Assembly (NCBI GenBank): GCA_004764695.1
Contig: SMSO01000037.1
Location: 658,747-722,746 of the forward strand
Direction: 5' to 3'
Source: Schizochytrium sp. TIO01
Taxonomy: Eukaryota; Protista; Bigyra: Labyrinthulomycetes
Length of the DNA stretch: 64,000 nt
Part shown: piece after piece, positions 16,459-44,515 of the stretch
Layout: each line of letters begins with the position of its first letter
Numbering within the stretch: position 1 is the stretch's first letter
Position numbers and translations under genes: made by a program
Notes under the pieces: generated by a model
Database searches by the model: none
Seen by the model: only the letters and a program-made list of their open reading frames with translations
What the model was told of the DNA's origin: nothing

Positions 16459-17547
16459 CATTTAATTTATTTATTTTTAAATCTTTCGCTTCACTCGTAC
16501 ACATATTATGTATATAACATAACATATATTTATTCGTATACTGGAGAAAAAGGAGGAGAAGCATGGACAATTCGAGGGTTTCATACGATGATTCGTTGTT
16601 TGCGGCGAATGCGCTTTTGCCTGCGCATGGAGGTCCGCAGGTACGTACTCCATCTGCTAACCGTGCGAGGGGGAAACAGAAACACAAACCGCCGGTACTT
16701 GTATGTCCCGACGCAGTGACTTGAGTACGGGACTGGTTTGGAGGAGGGAGCAGCGAATAGCCGTCTGCCTAGCACCATTTACGCCTCCAGAGGGCAAGCA
16801 AGAAAGACAATCCGTTCGTTCGTTCGTTCGTCCGTTCACCCAAATGGCCAAAGAAAAATGTATGTCATCAGAGCGCGTACATCACATGCATGCATATGTA
16901 TCGTTAACTCTGCTTTAGTTTATGATAATAAATCAAACAGATAAAGCAGCGCTGCAAAGGTAAAAACGTTGATCAACTCCAAAGTCGCGAGGGGGGCTGT
17001 TCTTAGATATTCGGTAGATACGCATGGATGAATTTCGAGGAATAGCCTGAAATAAAAACCACCATCGATCAGGAAATTAAACAAGAGAATGCAAATGCGC
17101 CAGAAAAAGGAAATTCGAGCAGGCTTCGAAACTGCCCTGCAAGGCAAGGCCTACTGCCCTCGATCTCTCTCCTCAGCAGCGTAGCTTATCGAGCTTCTTC
17201 TTACGCGAATGCAGCGCGCTAAAGACAAAGTTCGTCGTGTGGCAACAGTAATACTGATGTGCCCTATCGGTTGTAAAAGCGAGACGAGGCGAATCCGCTG
17301 CTTACGCTTGTTAATATGAAGAAGGCCCTCGCAGGGAAAATAGTTTTTTCTGCTCTTTTTTTACTTTCTTTTTTTCCTTGTAGTTACAGCCGCTGTTGTT
17401 TTGCGAGCGCCAAAAGGTCTCTTACTTGCCTAGAAGCGCGCAGTGAGGTCGAGAAGCTGTTACTAGTTGGCGCGTCCCTGTGGTGGTTTTGCGGGATCGT
17501 GCGCCCGCGCCGGCAAAAAAGGGGCTATCGAAGCACCTTTCTATATG

Positions 17548-17579
<32 letters not shown>

Positions 17580-17591
17580 TTATTCATTCAT

Positions 17592-17631
<40 letters not shown>

Positions 17632-18300
17632 ATAAGTGAAGTAATTTTAACAATTTGAAAGAAATACCTAATTGTACTGTTTAAAATTTAAAAAAATAAA
17701 AAATGTTATGTGTAAACGAGGCATTTATAATAAATGATAGATAATAGATAAATAATGATGGAAACGAGTGCTCGAAGTAACGAAAGGCCGGGAGAATCAA
17801 GGATCAGATGATATATATATATCTATACACCTGACAATGGTCGAAGAGCTGTAGTTTCTGCGAGTTCAATGAAAGTATGCGAGTTACAAAGTTATGCCAA
17901 GAAAGACCTGAGTTCTTCTCGCGAAGCAGGCACCTCGAAAGGCATGTTTGATGGACCTCAAAGCAGCAGCAGAGAATGAGAGAGAGAGAGAGAGAGAGAG
18001 CAGTTGTCTATATCTGCCTTCGGTAGAGAAGAGAAGAGGCACGGCCGCCGCGCTTAGCACTCCCTGCGATGGCTAGGCTCGAGGCCAAGCTGAAGCGGGA
18101 GTTCTTGTAATCGATGCTCTATTCACATCAAATCGCCGGTTGAGCGATCGTTCCGAGAGAGACTGAGCCTTCTTTTCATCAAGTTACTTCCTAACCAAGG
18201 TGTTCTTACCTACAGCACTGTTACTGTTACCTCTGTATTTTCCCCTATTATCACTCTGTTTTCATTTCATTTTCCAAATTTTAAATAATTCATTTAACCT

Positions 18301-18427
18301 TGAATCAAACCAACTTATCTCCTAGATTTTAAACTACAAAATTTGCAAAACTTGCATTTCATAGAAGGAGCTAAGACTCCATCACGAGCTAGTTAGACTA
18401 ACCCGCGACTCAATGAAATGATTTTTT
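18301..18427 (-). ncRNA. Predicted Fanzor2 omegaRNA (scaffold to 18321, guide about 18320-18301)
   Basis: 12-bp stem with three G-U pairs (18408-18382), GGAG/CUCC hairpin around CUUAG (18380-18367), UGCAA/UUGCA hairpin, and CUUAG pairing with the terminal CUAGG. These blocks recur in the second copy at 44397-44495. The 5' end is unknown. Confidence 0.75.
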
Positions 18428-20281
18428 TTAAATCATGTCCTTGGATAGGTAGCGTAAAAGGATGCCTCTGGCGGCATGGACATCACGGTCTGCTACATGG
18501 TTGCACTTGGGATTAGGGCATTGGAAAATCTTGGATGCCCCGAGGTTATGGTGGAGGGTACCACACTCATTGCATGTTTTGGAAGTGTAACTTTCTTGGC
18601 AAAGAACAAGCTTGCACCACGGGAACATCTCAGCCTTATGAATGAGAGCCTGGCGGAACCCAAAATGGGACCAACGACACATCATTCGAACAGACTTCTT
18701 GGAGATCCGTCGCTCCATCCTCCTGCTCATCTTAGAGGTTTCGAATTTGGGCAAGAGAACAACACGATAGTTTTCACAAAGCCAAAGCGCGAGCTTGCGG
18801 TGAATCTCAGTGATCTTGTTCTTGATCTTGAGTTGGGCGCGATAGAAGGCGCGCTTCAAGGGGGTGTTGAAATTGTCTTTATCACTGGATGCAGTTTTCT
18901 TTTTATCAATGCTGCTTTGGATCTTATCAACGCGGCGACAGAGATAGAATATGGTTCTAAAATCTTTCCCTGTGCCCCATTCAATGGCGCGGCCATCGGC
19001 GTCATACATCGTCTGAAACGAGCGAACACCCGGGTCTAGAGCAATGACACCATGGTGCGCCTTGGGTGCCTGGTCCATTGGACGCTTTTTTTCTTCTCGT
19101 AAGAAGCAGAAGTAGACATGCCCAAGGCGATTCATTTGCACACGCATGGCGTTCGAAATCTGGTCGGGGAACTTTTCTTTACGTGTTCGGAATTTTTTAA
19201 GAAAGTCGGAGGTCTTTGATTTCTTCAAATTCCAGGTACGTGCATTCACTTCGAAAATCTGTGATTCATCACGCTTGGTCCGAAACTTATAAAAAGATTG
19301 CTCATGAACTTTCTTTTGTACAGCGAGTTCTTCGTTTTTGGCTCGTCCCAAGTTAATAGCCTTGAAGAAATCCAGAATCCCGGAATCACGGATAGCCTGT
19401 GGGACCTCGAGAACCCATTCAGGAGCACCATTCCTTTCTTTAGATCGAACGGCTTTCTTTTCTCCATAGAGGGTACCATACGTTTGGGGATTCCCATCTT
19501 CATCTACTAAAACCTGCTTCGTCTTGGAATCCTTTTTGATGCACGCTTCTTGATGCAATTTGATGGCTTCTTTCTCGCCCTTCGCCACATCTCGATGAAA
19601 CGCAACGCCAGTATTGTAGGCTCTTCTAGTGACACCAAACCATTTAAGCAACTGTGTACGCTGATCTTTAGTAGGGTATACCCTGACCTTTCTGGCACGG
19701 ACAAGGTCATATTCTTTCTTGGAGGTCTTGCGCGCCTTCATGCGGGCTCGCTTCTTCCTCGCTGCGTCGTCGCCGTCTATTTTGCGCTGCTCGTTTTCCG
19801 TGATGCGATGCCACAAAGACGGTGATAATTCCGAGAAGGTCTTTGGTGAAGGTGTCTGAGTCTCCGGTATGTGCATCTTGGCCGTGTACCACGAGTTTGA
19901 CATTTTTTCTTTCGAAAAGGTGTTCCAGGAGGTCGACTGCGATTCGCGCAAGTCGGTCGCGGTGCATGACCACAACTTGGCCGATTCCGCCGCGGTCACA
20001 GGCGTCCAGTAGGGAGCACAGGCCTTGGCGTTTGAAATTGACCCCACTACCGATGTCTTTGTAGACGGCGGAAGCATCTGGGTAGGCGCGCTGGAGATCG
20101 CCAACCTGGCGTTCGAGGTCCTCCTTTTGCTTGGCCGAGGACACTCTGGCGTAGATAACGGTACATCCAGAGCTGCGTTGCTCGCGGCCGATGGAACCGC
20201 AATCAAAGATGCGCTCAACATCGTCACTGGCATAGACGCGCTTGCCTCCGGGGAAGCGCGCGAAGCGCACGCGTCCGCCAT
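18428..20281 (-). CDS. tnpB: Fanzor2 (eukaryotic IS607 TnpB-type RNA-guided endonuclease)
   Basis: Motifs: RKVRVYPTKDQR..WFGVTRRAYN, RuvC-I ALDPGVRSF, rearranged RuvC-II VLLPKFE, zinc finger TSKTCNECG..CPNPKC, RuvC-III DRDVHAARGI, and basic NLS-like RKKRARMKARK. The first in-frame ATG is at 20281 (617 aa); the ORF-track start at 20365 is a GTG. The real start is uncertain. Confidence 0.93.
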   Translation of the reverse strand: MADACASRASPEASASMPVTMLSASLIAVPSAASNAALDVPLSTPECPRPSKRRTSNARLAISSAPTQMLPPSTKTSVVGSISNAKACAPYWTPVTAAESAKLWSCTATDLRESQSTSWNTFSKEKMSNSWYTAKMHIPETQTPSPKTFSELSPSLWHRITENEQRKIDGDDAARKKRARMKARKTSKKEYDLVRARKVRVYPTKDQRTQLLKWFGVTRRAYNTGVAFHRDVAKGEKEAIKLHQEACIKKDSKTKQVLVDEDGNPQTYGTLYGEKKAVRSKERNGAPEWVLEVPQAIRDSGILDFFKAINLGRAKNEELAVQKKVHEQSFYKFRTKRDESQIFEVNARTWNLKKSKTSDFLKKFRTRKEKFPDQISNAMRVQMNRLGHVYFCFLREEKKRPMDQAPKAHHGVIALDPGVRSFQTMYDADGRAIEWGTGKDFRTIFYLCRRVDKIQSSIDKKKTASSDKDNFNTPLKRAFYRAQLKIKNKITEIHRKLALWLCENYRVVLLPKFETSKMSRRMERRISKKSVRMMCRWSHFGFRQALIHKAEMFPWCKLVLCQESYTSKTCNECGTLHHNLGASKIFQCPNPKCNHVADRDVHAARGILLRYLSKDMI

Positions 20282-20405
20282 CGGCCCAGCCCCGAAGGGC
20301 GCTTGCTGAGACCCCAAACTTCCGGTGAAAGAACTTTGCTGGTTTGTATTCGAGCTTTGCTCCACTTGCAGTGTTTGGAGCTTGGCGGTTCCTTGGCCTC
20401 CCCAT
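19707..20405 (-). CDS. tnpA: IS607-family serine recombinase/transposase
   Basis: 232 aa. N-terminal MerR-like wHTH (FGVSASALRGWADGGRV..PGGKRVY), catalytic VIYARVSSAKQKEDLERQ, DIGSGVNFKRQGL, DRLAR, and C-terminal DLLGIITVFVASHHGKR. Confidence 0.95.
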   Translation of the reverse strand: MGRPRNRQAPNTASGAKLEYKPAKFFHRKFGVSASALRGWADGGRVRFARFPGGKRVYASDDVERIFDCGSIGREQRSSGCTVIYARVSSAKQKEDLERQVGDLQRAYPDASAVYKDIGSGVNFKRQGLCSLLDACDRGGIGQVVVMHRDRLARIAVDLLEHLFERKNVKLVVHGQDAHTGDSDTFTKDLLGIITVFVASHHGKRAAQNRRRRRSEEEASPHEGAQDLQERI

Positions 20406-23400
20406 TTTCTTACCTAACCTCCACTTCTTATTAAAGATCTAACTAAGTATAATATATGATTAATATGAAACAAGCACATCGAAATATAAGTTATCGAAAT
20501 TTTAACGGTTTTTGTCATACTGCATATTTCGACCTATGGCGGACTTATAGATAAATTGTAGAAACACATAGATTACCTCAAGTGCTGTAAGAGACAAAGC
20601 CTTTCTTCCCTCACGGGCTTCTTGGCTTGCCATCTGCATTGAGAGGGAGGGACGGGCAGTCCTCTCCTCCGCCCCCCTCCCGCCTTGCCGCTGCTTCCTC
20701 CTCGCTCTCTGGCTCCCTCCCTCCCTTCCTCGCTTGCATGCCTGCTCGCTTGCTTGCTTGCCTGCTTGCTTACTCGCTTCTGGCTAGAACAGGCCCGAAT
20801 CAAACGCTAGAGAGCCTCGTCCTCTCTGCCTTGACACGTCCCCGCAGCTGCGGTGTTCTTGTGGAAGGAAGTGCATCGCCAACTCCCTCTCCCTCTCTGC
20901 TGCTCTGCTCTGTTTATGTGTCTCTATTACTCACTCGCTCACTCACCTATGAGGGGAAAAGGCAAAAAGGCCCTTTCGCCCTCTCAGTTTCGAAGATGGT
21001 CTCCCTGCGCAAATAAACTCACGCGTGGGTTCTTTCTTCTTGCTCTTCTCGTCCTCCTCGCCGCCATTGTCTTCGTCGTTGTCGCTGTCGTCGTTGCCGT
21101 TGTCGCTGTCGGTGTCGGTGTCGGTGTCGTCGTCGAAGCTGGAGCGAGCGGCTTCGTTTCACTGACTTTGGGGGCGGCTATAGCAGAAGCAGTACTAGCA
21201 GCAGCGGCTTTGCCAGGCCAGAGCGCTTCGGCGTTGGCAGGGGCCTCGGTACTGCCTGGCTTCCACCGTGCTCGGGAGTGGGGGAGGGGAGCGAAACGCA
21301 GCTGCCTGTTTGCTGACGGGGCGGGTTTGGCGGAGCTAGATGGAGGCCAGCGGAGGATGGCGCTGGAATCGTCTTCGTTCTTGTTCAAGACGAGCTTTGA
21401 GCGAGCGAAAGTTTCGTATAAATAAAAGCGCAGTGTGTGTGCCCGAATGCGCTGCTTTTTTCTTTTCTTTTCTTTTCTTTTTGTTTCGTTTCTTTTCGTT
21501 CCTTTCTCTTTGGCGTCTTCGTTTCATGGCTCTTGGTAGTCGGATTGCCATCGGTAGTGATAGACTCGAAGCTTCTTCTACTCAGATATCCATTTTAGCT
21601 ACCTGTCTTTTGTTTTGTTTTTGTTTGGTTTGTTTGTTTGTTGGTTGGTTGGTTGGTTGGTTTTATCGGGTCTTGCCGTGGAAATTTAGATTTCCTGGCA
21701 ACCCTGGAGCATAATGGGAAATCGAGTTTGGTCGGTCGGAGGGAGCTGAGGAGCAATTTGTTGCTATAGAGCCTCTAGCTGCCTACTGACTTGCGCTGTG
21801 TATATCCTCCATCATCTGGTGTATATTCTACTTCGGTCTGGACGCTCTCTCCTTTGTATTTTATCTTCTCTCGCTCAGTCTTCGGAGTCCTTTGTTGTAT
21901 TTTAATTCTATTGTGGCCTATATCTATGTAATTAAATAAATCCAATTAAATCAAATTATATATGCGTAATAATAATAGTAATTTAATAATCATAAAATAG
22001 CAACATAACACAATACTATAAACTTTCAAGTACGTAGAGACATGATAATGATAGATAATGCAGAAATCAAAGTGACAGCGATAGATAAAGAAAGACGAGA
22101 GCAGCCTTCGCCACAATAAAAAGCTTATCAACCACCTAGTCTCTTGATCTATCTACCAGCTAATCTTTCTTTAACTTGTAAGGGGTCGAATTTCGGGAAT
22201 ATGAATGTGACAGTGGAGGAGGCCCGACTTGCCCTCCTCGTGCCCTCTGGCGCCTTCCCCTTCAAATTGCCTCCTCAAGGCTTCTCCGCCTCGAGGCTGC
22301 TCTGAGAGAGAAAGAAGCAAGAATAAGAAGAACAGAACAGAACAACACAAACAACAACAAACGAGTTTTCTGTCACCTCTTTGTTGAGCAAGCACGCTTG
22401 CTGGCAAACCTTGCGCGCCTCCCTCCACACAGCGAAAAAGCACTTCCCAGCCGAGGGAGATATTGCTACGCTGATTTCACTCAGCATGAGAAGCACTTAT
22501 ACAGAGGCAGTGGAGCTCAGTAAAGAAACTTGAAACAACCAGCGAAATAAAGGAGTAGTTTTACAGTGCAGCATAGAGGGGGGAGGCGAATTTTGAGAGG
22601 AACGCTGCGGGAGCTTCACGAAAGGACCACAGTGAAGAAAAAAATGAAATGACACTTGGAGCTGAGCAGAGGAGATGGAAGGGATTCCAGTCCTGCAGCA
22701 AAGCACTGGTCTTTCCTTTTGAGGGGTGATGATTTTTTTAATTTATTTTTTTCTCTTTCCTTTCTTTCTTTCTTTCTTTCTTTCTTAGTTTATAAAACCC
22801 TCCTTTTCAAACTTTTATTCGCGTGAAAAAAAATAATGATCAAATGAAAAGGACCCCGAAACTCGAAGTTGAAGCAAGAAAGACAAAATTTTGCGGTGCT
22901 CGCGAAGACCTGAGAAAACGACCTGCCTGTGGATTGGGGGTGGGGAGGGAATCCACGGCGCTGGGTTAGCGTAGCCTATAATTTCCTCGAGGTGAGCGAC
23001 GCCCAAGTCGCCGTCCTCCACGCGCAACCGTCGGAGCTGTGGCGATGAATGAAGGAATGAATGAATGAATGACCTCCCCGAGAGATTTAGATTGGCAGAA
23101 ACAAATAAAGAAAAGGAAAACGATTTCCTTTCATCTCCGGCACCCCGCTCTCTTTCATTGATAACGAATAAGTACCTCACTAGCCAGCCCAACCACGGAG
23201 CGGCGGCAGGTTTTGAGATCGAGGAGAGCGTATATAGAATAGATCCATTTACAGAGAAGAAGCAATACCGATCGCGGCTTACTTCAAGTTTGCAGGAGTA
23301 ATACAAATGGTAAAGACCAAATAAAACTCGCCGCTTCTGGGAAACTGCGTGCAAGCCGCCATTGACAGTAGACGGAAAAGCCAAATTTTGTACTCTTGTA

Positions 23401-43584: not shown

Positions 43585-44495
43585 TTCCATATAAACGATA
43601 TGTCATAATTATTTAGGTCTCTGTCGTTTGTTAAGAAGTGGAAGTTAGGTAAGAAAATGGCATGACCAAGGAATCAACAAGCTCTAAACACTATAAGTGA
43701 AGCACATATACAGTACAAGCTAGTGAAGTACTTCAACCAGAATTTTTGTGTCTCAGCGAGTGCCCTTCGGTCACTTTCCCAGAGGCAATCGCTTGTACGC
43801 AAGTGACGATATTAAGCCCATCTATGGCTGCGTTTTGTTCCGGCGGCCGCGAACAAGGCAGAACCCATTTTCTACACCAGAGACCTCTACCAAGTCCAAA
43901 GAGGATTTTCCAATGTTAGATTGGTGGCCCCCAGCGTGCTTATCCAGACACCTCCGCCGTCTACAAACACATCGGTAGAGAGATAAGCTTTAAAAGGCCT
44001 GGCTTACGCGCCCTACTGGACTAACGAGATTCATCGCAAGCTTCCACTTTGGGCTCTGTGAAAACTAGGGTGGAATCCTTTTGCAAACCTCAACAATTTA
44101 ACAAGACGGATCAAAACCAAGACCACTCGAACAATGTGTCTTTGGCTTCCGCCAAACGCTCATTCACAAAGCCGAGCTTTTCCCTTGCCAGTGGTGTAAA
44201 ACTAGTTTTTTGCCGAGAGGATTGCACTCTAAAGCCATGTAATGGATGCGGTACCATCCACAACAAGCTTGGAACATCCAAGGTTTGTAAATGTCCCCGA
44301 AAATTGCAAACACGTAGCCGATCGCAATATCGACGCCGCCGGAGACATCCTTTGGGGCTACCTATCCATCCAAGGGCACGCTTCAAGAATTACCTTTGAG
44401 TCGCGGCTTAGTTTTAAACCTGCAATTGGGCCTTAGACCCACGTTGTTATCATAGAAAATGCAAGTTTTGCAAGTTTTACAGGTTAAGCTCTAAG
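43585..44495 (+). mobile_element. Degenerate, internally deleted relative of the IS607-Fanzor2 element
   Basis: Aligns with the intact leader (TAAGAAGTGGA.GTTAGGTAAGAAAATGG, ATG at 43657) and 5' tnpA up to CCCTACTGGAC (44021). It then jumps to the Fanzor C-terminus (GAGATTCA.CGCAAGCT, zinc finger CNGCG) and the right end. It carries stops and frameshifts, and its left boundary is uncertain. Confidence 0.88.
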
Positions 44496-44515
44496 TGTTT
44501 GCCTTCATTTCTTTA
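44397..44515 (+). ncRNA. omegaRNA-like scaffold of the degenerate copy (putative guide 44496-44515)
   Basis: TTGAGTCGCGG.TTAG block, TGGG/CCCA hairpin enclosing CTTAGA (exact complement of the terminal TCTAAG), and AAATGCAAGTTTTGCAA block. Confidence 0.55.

Follow-up and report, generated by a model that had tools for sequence, protein, structure and literature searches.

A young, probably autonomous IS607-Fanzor2 transposon family in Schizochytrium whose nuclease gene appears to begin inside the transposase gene

A stretch of 64,000 nucleotides (nt) from Schizochytrium sp. TIO01 (contig SMSO01000037.1, positions 658,747 to 722,746; hereafter the window) carries an IS607-type transposon with a Fanzor2, a eukaryotic nuclease of the TnpB type. 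Can this element still move, and where does its nuclease gene begin? A first-pass annotation, made from the letters alone, had proposed an apparently intact IS607-Fanzor2 element and a candidate new compact nuclease. The best overall explanation, which we hold with good confidence as a whole, is that of an autonomous thraustochytrid IS607 transposon, a member of a young, multi-copy and recently mobile family, whose conserved nuclease is a Fanzor2 of 617 amino acids (aa), not 437 aa, overlapping the transposase gene tnpA. The element and its transposase are laid out as follows.

18319..20521, minus strand: whole IS607-type element, with ends taken from 14 aligned copies and an empty-site contig.
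20520..20522, minus strand: left junction CAG; AG is the crossover core common with the right end and C a candidate third base of the target-adjacent motif (TAM) or target.
20406..20519, minus strand: non-coding region of the left end, with the highest variability within the element (9.8% diversity) and presumed to hold the promoter and TnpA binding sites.
19707..20405, minus strand: tnpA, encoding a 232-aa IS607 serine recombinase (NF033518, 144.2 bits for a cutoff of 110; PF00239, E = 3e-20).

The resolvase domain (PF00239) spans TnpA residues 83-217, a MerR-like helix-turn-helix (HTH; weak matches to MerR and HTH_17) occupies residues 28-66, and the YARVSS motif places the codon of the catalytic serine, Ser89, at 20139-20141. 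The uninterrupted serine transposase with YARVSS described at first sight was indeed found, since the 232-aa open reading frame (ORF) is intact and scores above the NF033518 cutoff. The element thus shows what is expected of IS607: a serine TnpA with an HTH and a catalytic serine, and crossover at an AG dinucleotide without repeats or duplication.

This last point came from the alignment of 14 copies with their flanks. The copies have common sharp ends, (C)AG-TATGACAAAAA on the left and ...TTTAAAATCTAAG-AG on the right, and the flanking DNA is unrelated from copy to copy; neither terminal inverted repeats nor a target-site duplication was found among these 14 copies. With the empty site described below, the alignment places the ends of the window copy at 18319/18321 and 20519/20521, so that the insertion measures 2201 bp, to which one copy of the crossover dinucleotide AG is added. 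The span first given to the element, 18321-20536, was nearly right in its place and overran the element on one side by about 15 nt. In 11 of the 16 informative copies, the left end follows C-AG. A longer crossover core, TAGG, was ruled out: the right-end consensus of the family is CTAAGAG, and the empty site has only AG in common.

Public sequencing runs were compared over positions 17000-22500 of the window, all four in the form of assembled contigs. An 879-nt contig of single-copy depth from run X5 (organism C) joins 18320 directly to the left flank, and the 16 bases between the joined parts are the window's own bases 20522-20537. Written in the direction of the element, the empty site reads ...GAAATATGC-AG-ATAAGTTG..., with one AG, and the occupied site ...ATATGC AG TATGAC...(2201 bp)...CTAGG AG ATAAGTTG..., with an AG at each junction. 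One AG in the empty site and one per junction is the signature of transposition by an IS607 serine recombinase at a matching dinucleotide, a mode of crossover known from Yoon et al. (PMC10711439). Run X4 (organism B) contains a contig of single-copy depth in which the left end continues into the same flank; the insertion is thus present there. The insertion is therefore polymorphic between related strains, and the locus is neither a contaminant nor a misassembly; this early worry is also dispelled by the presence of copies on at least 13 contigs. Summed contig depth on the element reached 100-400 times that of the flank in X4 and X5 (presumed DNA runs), above the copy number of the assembly, an excess that could come from summed variant contigs or from higher copy numbers in these strains.

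How many copies exist, and are they intact? A DNA search of the 64-Mb, 37-contig assembly returned at least 20 near-full copies at 95-97% identity, together with older families at 65-90% identity and many fragments, spread over many contigs; the genome-wide search for copies and empty sites that had been suggested thus gave both. Nine of the 14 full-length copies keep the 232-aa TnpA and the full nuclease ORF intact, and three (L003, L004, L014) have a premature stop in tnpA and an intact nuclease. Substitutions in the nuclease core amounted to 87 nonsynonymous changes (105.5 expected) and 64 synonymous ones (41.7 expected). The resulting ratio of about 0.54 fits a family partly under selection and partly decaying after insertion.

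One may ask whether such a family still moves at all, or whether its copies are recent segmental duplications and relics whose Fanzor is decaying or domesticated by the host. The premature tnpA stops, a 294-bp insertion carried by L015-L017 and L020, the older broken families and a core dN/dS (nonsynonymous to synonymous ratio) of just about 0.54 are what an immobile family would show. However, the flanks differ for each copy and the ends are sharp and common, a related strain has a precise empty site with a single AG, both ORFs are kept in nine copies despite a divergence of about 4% that is expected to create stops, and transcripts exist. We thus consider an immobile family very unlikely and keep to a recently mobile one. 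The first suggestion of an autonomous, possibly active copy agrees with these data, namely many intact copies, the empty site in a related strain and two matching transcriptome ORFs derived from poly(A) RNA.

Two further observations concern the copies themselves. The 294-bp insertion lies in the 5' part of tnpA, at the equivalent of 20323/20324, in L015, L016 (1207-1500), L017, L020 and G000:C13:5455965. It contains a telomere-like (CCTAA)n run and belongs to a separate dispersed repeat family found in at least 40 genomic places. Since it is 99-100% identical among the five Fanzor copies, copies with a broken tnpA must still have multiplied, in trans or by segmental duplication. Elsewhere, L002 and L003 (G000:C13:3963201-3965397, plus strand, and 3978540-3980740, minus strand) lie 13 kb apart in opposite orientation, and fragments of an older family (C13:3962520-3963114) adjoin one of them; the place may be a nest of insertions, or one where the element prefers to land.

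We then considered the nuclease, whose main features are listed here in 617-aa numbering.

18428..20281, minus strand: long form of the Fanzor2 gene (617 aa), whose start is the element's second ATG and whose frame is +1 relative to tnpA.
19034-19036, minus strand: D416 (ALDPGVR, the DPG motif), aligned with ApmFz2 Asp324.
18593-18595, minus strand: E563 (LCQESYTSKTC), aligned with ApmFz2 Glu467.
18482-18484, minus strand: D600 (ADRD), aligned with ApmFz2 Asp501.
Residues 570, 573, 588 and 593: zinc-finger cysteines.

According to the ORF list, the nuclease frame is open over 645 codons (18428-20365) and passes through tnpA in another frame. It matches PF12323 and PF07282 and reaches 88.6 bits with NCBIfam guided_TnpB, below the cutoff of 100 bits; together with NF033518 and PF00239 for the transposase, these are the results of the search with hidden Markov models that had been recommended. 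By sequence the closest solved structure is 9b0l_P, the mimivirus TnpB-like protein L79 or ApmFz2 (E = 2.5e-19). An AlphaFold2 model built on a 45-sequence alignment (mean pLDDT 79.8, pTM 0.75) had the same protein as its first-ranked Foldseek match (E = 3.3e-18), and VIA-align superposed it on 9b0l_P with a Z of 22.6 and a root-mean-square deviation of 4.3 Å over 431 residues, ISDra2 TnpB being lower (Z 19.8).

The catalytic triad of ApmFz2 consists of Asp324, Glu467 and Asp501, Glu467 having moved about 50 residues C-terminally (PMC11832414), and the Fanzor signature combines DPG with a glutamate placed six residues ahead of the zinc finger (Yoon et al., PMC10711439). An HMMER alignment to 9b0l_P, on which the geometry of the active site rests, assigns D416, E563 and D600 to the triad, and the three residues are invariant in the 45-sequence alignment of relatives. 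E563 lies six residues ahead of the zinc finger and is thus an exact fit to the signature. The displaced catalytic glutamate had at first been sought in PKFE; this residue (E514) stands at the canonical TnpB position but is Q, G or others among relatives, and was rejected, the invariant glutamate being E563 in QESYTSKTC. The other residues noted at that stage, the aspartates of DPG and DRD (D416, D600), the four cysteines and the basic stretches resembling a nuclear localisation signal (NLS), are all present.

Membership of Fanzor2 is supported by these comparisons: the mimivirus Fanzor2 is the top match in both sequence and fold, and DPG, the shifted glutamate and an IS607 TnpA are found in a eukaryotic setting (a 64-Mb genome with copies on many contigs, and MMETSP transcriptome ORFs 95% identical), along with an N-terminal domain (NTD) on the predicted model. 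In a quick tree (SH-aLRT support), built without the published Fanzor1/Fanzor2/TnpB reference set, the nuclease groups with eukaryote and metagenome proteins, including one of Durusdinium, and stands apart from the cyanobacterial clade and from that of giant-virus metagenome-assembled genomes (MAGs). Two sequences of bacterial MAGs, L057 (Hydrogenophaga, 2.1-kb contig) and L058 (Bacteroidetes, 2.0-kb contig, paired with P0069 in the quick tree), fall within the eukaryote/metagenome group and are probably mis-binned eukaryotic or viral DNA. By analogy with its characterised relatives, the nuclease would carry out omegaRNA-guided, TAM-dependent cleavage of both DNA strands.

The window copy offers two possible starts for this protein.

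19739..19741, minus strand: ATG of Met181, start of an apparent 437-aa ORF; ACG (Thr) in the 13 other aligned copies.
19712..20020, minus strand: residues 88-190, the N-terminal domain of Fanzor2, with a predicted fold (pLDDT 65-92).

If the nuclease were a TnpB-sized protein of 437 aa read from Met181 (19741), the open frame upstream would be a by-product of tnpA codon usage. Such a protein would be in keeping with the place of this ATG in the window copy, shortly before the tnpA stop, where many bacterial IS607 elements have theirs, and with the fact that bacterial TnpB structures align to the model just from residue 191 on. The ATG is, however, unique to this copy: the other 13 of the 14 copies have ACG, and both transcriptome ORFs have a threonine at position 181. 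In contrast, the nuclease frame of every copy holds an ATG either at the counterpart of 20281 or 16 codons further on (about 20233), and where one of the two is ACG the other is ATG. No further ATG, in any frame, lies between the tnpA ATG (20405) and the equivalent of 20281, the first ATG of the nuclease frame.

Transcripts and relatives agree with the upstream start. Two MMETSP transcriptome ORFs, recorded as complete, have 601 and 617 aa and an identity of 95% to the window ORF; the longer, aligned in full, is colinear with the 617-aa translation of the window. The nearest other relatives, among them a Durusdinium trenchii protein, have 41-49% identity, and most are 580-710 aa long. They have in common an N-terminal module, STS..C.PFW...S..LWSCT.TDL...W......NSWFTV...SPKT...SLW..ITENE, in which W131 is invariant (45 of 45 sequences). 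In the model, residues 1-87 are predicted to be disordered, with basic NLS-like runs, and VIA-align superposes residues 88-617 on 53-518 of 9b0l_P. The NTD of ApmFz2 (53-130), which is preceded by a disordered NLS, is composed of RuvC-R, which makes the RuvC fold complete and touches the omegaRNA, and of a basic thumb clasping the target DNA next to the TAM (PMC11832414). Residues 88-190 are thus predicted to correspond to the RuvC-R and thumb of the mimivirus enzyme.

Taken together, the ATG/ACG pattern, the transcripts, the relatives, the model and the ApmFz2 NTD are independent lines which indicate that the true ORF starts far upstream, within tnpA. The 437-aa form is further contradicted by the persistence of the upstream region in a locus without tnpA and by a cross-lineage test for dual coding, both given below, and we grant it very little credence. 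As a 437-aa product would be without the NTD, the word compact, used when the nuclease was first noticed, is misleading for a conserved product of 617 aa nested over the transposase gene.

Is the overlap really coding in both frames? It covers the following stretch.

19707..20281, minus strand: 575 nt coding in two frames, frame 0 for tnpA and frame +1 for the N-terminal region of Fanzor2.

In the window copy the +1 frame has zero stops, for 3.3-3.9 expected when tnpA codons are reshuffled synonymously (P = 0.0075-0.013); this single-copy test, taken alone at P of about 0.01, would leave some room for a 437-aa protein. Diversity among copies is 1.6% in the overlap versus 4.3% in the rest of the nuclease gene (0.023 versus 0.057 at tnpA third positions), and within the family the split of substitutions by frame, based on 39 sites, is no different from expectation. 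An overlapping tnpA and long nuclease frame, the nuclease always in +1, was found in metagenome and giant-virus-MAG contigs (L033, which equals L054; L034/L036/L048; L035; L038/L039). Across five lineages the +1 translations are 28.4% identical, TnpA itself being only 40% identical, where 21.2 ± 0.8% is expected under a null in which each TnpA protein, with its codon usage, is preserved (z = 9.1, 0 of 2000 shuffles). Finally, L043, a 103-kb contig, encodes a long nuclease with the N-terminal motif and has no tnpA in any other frame, which shows that the motif is maintained as protein in its own right.

A bacterial search gave 80 loci, mostly from Microcoleus, Oscillatoria, Moorena and other cyanobacteria, the hosts of the 'pro-Fanzors' of Yoon et al. 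(PMC10711439). In 76 of them tnpA is on the same strand with the nuclease frame in +1, the overlap measuring 500-700 nt in most of the 76, and the PFW..LW..SWF motif is present. When 60 loci were picked by tnpA alone, the +1 frame was stop-free across the aligned tnpA in 40; reshuffling expects 4.1, and the +2 frame averages 10.5. The tnpA and nuclease ORF starts are often no more than about 10 nt apart, so that tnpA is wholly nested. The presence of the overlap in bacterial relatives means that the arrangement is ancestral to the clade and not a eukaryotic novelty.

Some details of the starts differ between groups. In cyanobacterial L064, L069, L072, L079, L110 and others, the start codons of tnpA and tnpB are about 4-22 nt apart, and a tnpA of about 205 codons is nested in +1 of a tnpB of about 565 codons. 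In L033 (2248-2952) and L035 (2302-2910) the tnpA frame is open and conserved with no ATG near its start, and the ATG of the nuclease frame is embedded in Tyr-Gly codons of tnpA (TATGG).

We found no description of the tnpA/nuclease overlap in the open-access literature, and priority elsewhere is possible; the pro-Fanzor paper in Nucleic Acids Research (PMC10711439) contains none of the words overlap, N-terminal and extension, and the paper on the ApmFz2 structure (PMC11832414) does not mention TnpA. On balance we favour, with moderate confidence, a general statement: across the pro-Fanzor/Fanzor2 branch of IS607, the N-terminal region of the nuclease (NLS, RuvC-R and thumb) overprints tnpA in +1, the domain coexists with the tnpA frame and may have arisen inside it, and the two outputs are coupled through a dual-coding mRNA. 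If this is true, many TnpB and Fanzor2 ORFs of the branch are annotated too short in databases, and coupling would operate through starts about 10 nt apart in cyanobacteria and through the use of the first or second AUG in the protist.

An RNA-guided nuclease needs its RNA, for which the right end of the element is a candidate.

18319..18439, minus strand: scaffold resembling an omegaRNA, made of four hairpins in the 3' untranslated end and an unpaired tail up to ...CTAGGAG; it may reach upstream into the ORF.
18299..18318, minus strand: bases ATAAGTTGGTTTGATTCAAG, which follow the right end in the flank and are predicted to serve as the guide of a read-through omegaRNA.

The 242 nt that lead up to the right end have a minimum free energy of -65.7 kcal/mol (z = -3.74), better than all 200 shuffles; the four hairpins lie past the stop codon, and the tail, which ends in ...CUAGGAG, is unpaired. 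A covariance model (R1) built from 11 young copies recovers the right ends of older families. In the corresponding alignment of 27 sequences (A5), 96.6% of cells are paired and compensatory changes occur in 12 of 40 pairs, whereas shuffles have 2.5 ± 1.3 (0 of 500) and slid controls 3-7; these counts rest on an alignment fitted to the model, which favours the structure. The raw sequences themselves nevertheless show swaps from A-U to G-C and from G-C to C-G in helices two and four. The consensus that RNAalifold derived from a plain MAFFT alignment was weak (-12.75 kcal/mol, 1 compensatory pair) because a variable hairpin was misaligned, which the covariance-model alignment resolved. No match to the 3' end was found in Rfam. 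The structured 3' non-coding end first noticed by eye is thus upheld by fold and covariation, and it fits an omegaRNA scaffold. By the mechanism of TnpB and Fanzor2 (PMC10530073, PMC11832414), the guide would be taken from the right flank. A second, diverged right end of this type lies in the window at 44375-44498 (plus strand; 30.2 bits, E = 1e-4 with the young-copy covariance model) and finishes in CTAAGTG, like those of old families.

How are two proteins made from overlapping frames? Leaky scanning of one unspliced mRNA past the tnpA AUG is the route we propose, and the context of this AUG is strong (aaaAUGg), so that scanning should be inefficient. Alternative splicing or separate promoters could produce the two proteins instead, the overlap being a regulatory switch between transposase and nuclease, and the strong context speaks for such a route. 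However, no splice joint was seen inside the element in the contigs of any run examined, both transcriptome ORFs are colinear with the DNA, and in bacteria the same overlap is found without any splicing. Breaks at 20323/20324, considered as a splice joint, were rejected, as they correspond to the 294-bp repeat inserted in other copies. We therefore find splicing or separate promoters unlikely and retain leaky scanning.

Several points count against our overall explanation. Besides the strong tnpA AUG and the reservations stated with their figures above (the guided_TnpB score, the substitution split by frame and the fitted RNA alignment), X19, the sole certain RNA-seq run, has one contig of 331 nt at a depth of 2.9. 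Since the run data are contigs, transcript ends, transcript levels and rare spliced forms are invisible in them. The 617-aa product and its start codon, the omegaRNA, the TAM and the cleavage are predictions from sequence.

We propose the following life cycle, in which excision, omegaRNA and homing are taken from the published mechanism of the family (PMC10530073, PMC11832414, Yoon et al.). TnpA would excise the double-stranded element, presumably as a circle by analogy with its relatives, and insert it by AG crossover, usually in a C-AG context and without duplication. TnpA and Fanzor2 would be translated from one mRNA, the overlap encoding the disordered basic head and the NTD of Fanzor2, and the core supplying D416, the shifted E563 and D600 around the four-Cys zinc finger. 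A read-through transcript of the structured 3' end would be processed to an omegaRNA with the right flank as its guide, and the Fanzor2 ribonucleoprotein would enter the nucleus through its basic head. There it would cut empty C-AG sites with a matching flank, and homologous repair would restore the element, resulting in homing or retention. The occupied right junction has G-AG, not C-AG, and would spare the element itself; this parallels the CGG/GGG distinction of ISXfa1 and would, we predict, protect the occupied site.

How does this element compare with known systems? The nuclease resembles ApmFz2/L79 (PDB 9B0L) in its three catalytic residues, namely the aspartates of DPG and DRD and a glutamate placed six residues ahead of the zinc finger, and, on the model, in a disordered basic head followed by a structured NTD, a domain that bacterial TnpB structures are without (PMC11832414). 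An IS607 serine TnpA accompanies both proteins, and both have a structured 3' RNA. The window nuclease differs by an identity of about 18-20%, by a longer N-terminal region (190 versus 130 residues) and by its host, a cellular eukaryote with at least 20 copies. The TAM of ApmFz2 is reported to be GGG, whereas the junction core in the window is AG in a C-AG context.

The cyanobacterial pro-Fanzor IS607 TnpBs (PMC10711439) have in common with the window DPG and the shifted glutamate, an IS607 TnpA, the PFW..LW..SWF motif and a nuclease frame open over tnpA in +1. Their identity is 26-30% and they form a separate clade in the quick tree; their tnpA is wholly nested, with ORF starts about 10 nt apart, whereas the window nuclease starts 124 nt downstream of the tnpA AUG, and they need neither an NLS nor a eukaryotic translation strategy. 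Canonical TnpB, unlike the window protein, is without an NTD, and some 50 residues separate its RuvC-II glutamate from the zinc finger downstream. IS607 and ISXfa1 resemble the window element by a serine recombinase with an N-terminal HTH, the absence of inverted repeats and duplications, a dinucleotide at both ends and a guide beyond the right end. In both cases the right junction is one base off the TAM (CGG versus GGG in ISXfa1, GAG versus the candidate CAG in the window), but the core of IS607/ISXfa1 is GG and their TAM G-rich, whereas the core of the window element is AG. Fanzor1 (SpuFz1 of Spizellomyces punctatus, PDB 8GKH) is likewise a eukaryotic RNA-guided nuclease derived from TnpB with a rearranged RuvC; its Foldseek match is far weaker (E = 4e-5 versus 3e-18), and Fanzor1 is carried by Mariner, hAT and Helitron transposons, not by IS607.

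Knowledge of IS607-borne Fanzor2 elements, from protists as well as giant viruses, goes back to Bao and Jurka (2013), and their activity has been known since 2023. The kind of element is therefore known, this family adds a member to it, and the novelty first claimed for the nuclease was overstated. Beyond what is known, the locus offers direct evidence of recent mobility, a junction, C-AG, that is not G-rich and, above all, the probably clade-wide dual coding of tnpA and the NTD.

A young, multi-copy Fanzor2 family with an exact empty site, in a culturable and transformable protist, makes a practical system for studying the role of Fanzors in a native host. The C-AG target, if confirmed, would widen the TAM range beyond the GGG of characterised IS607 TnpB and Fanzor2 enzymes. 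The nested NTD bears on how such ORFs are annotated and cloned, since a TnpB-sized construct would be without the domain. In cyanobacteria, giant viruses and this protist, a part of Fanzor2 that structural work calls essential overprints tnpA, and the nested gene thus bears on the balance between transposase and nuclease expression and on the origin of new protein domains.

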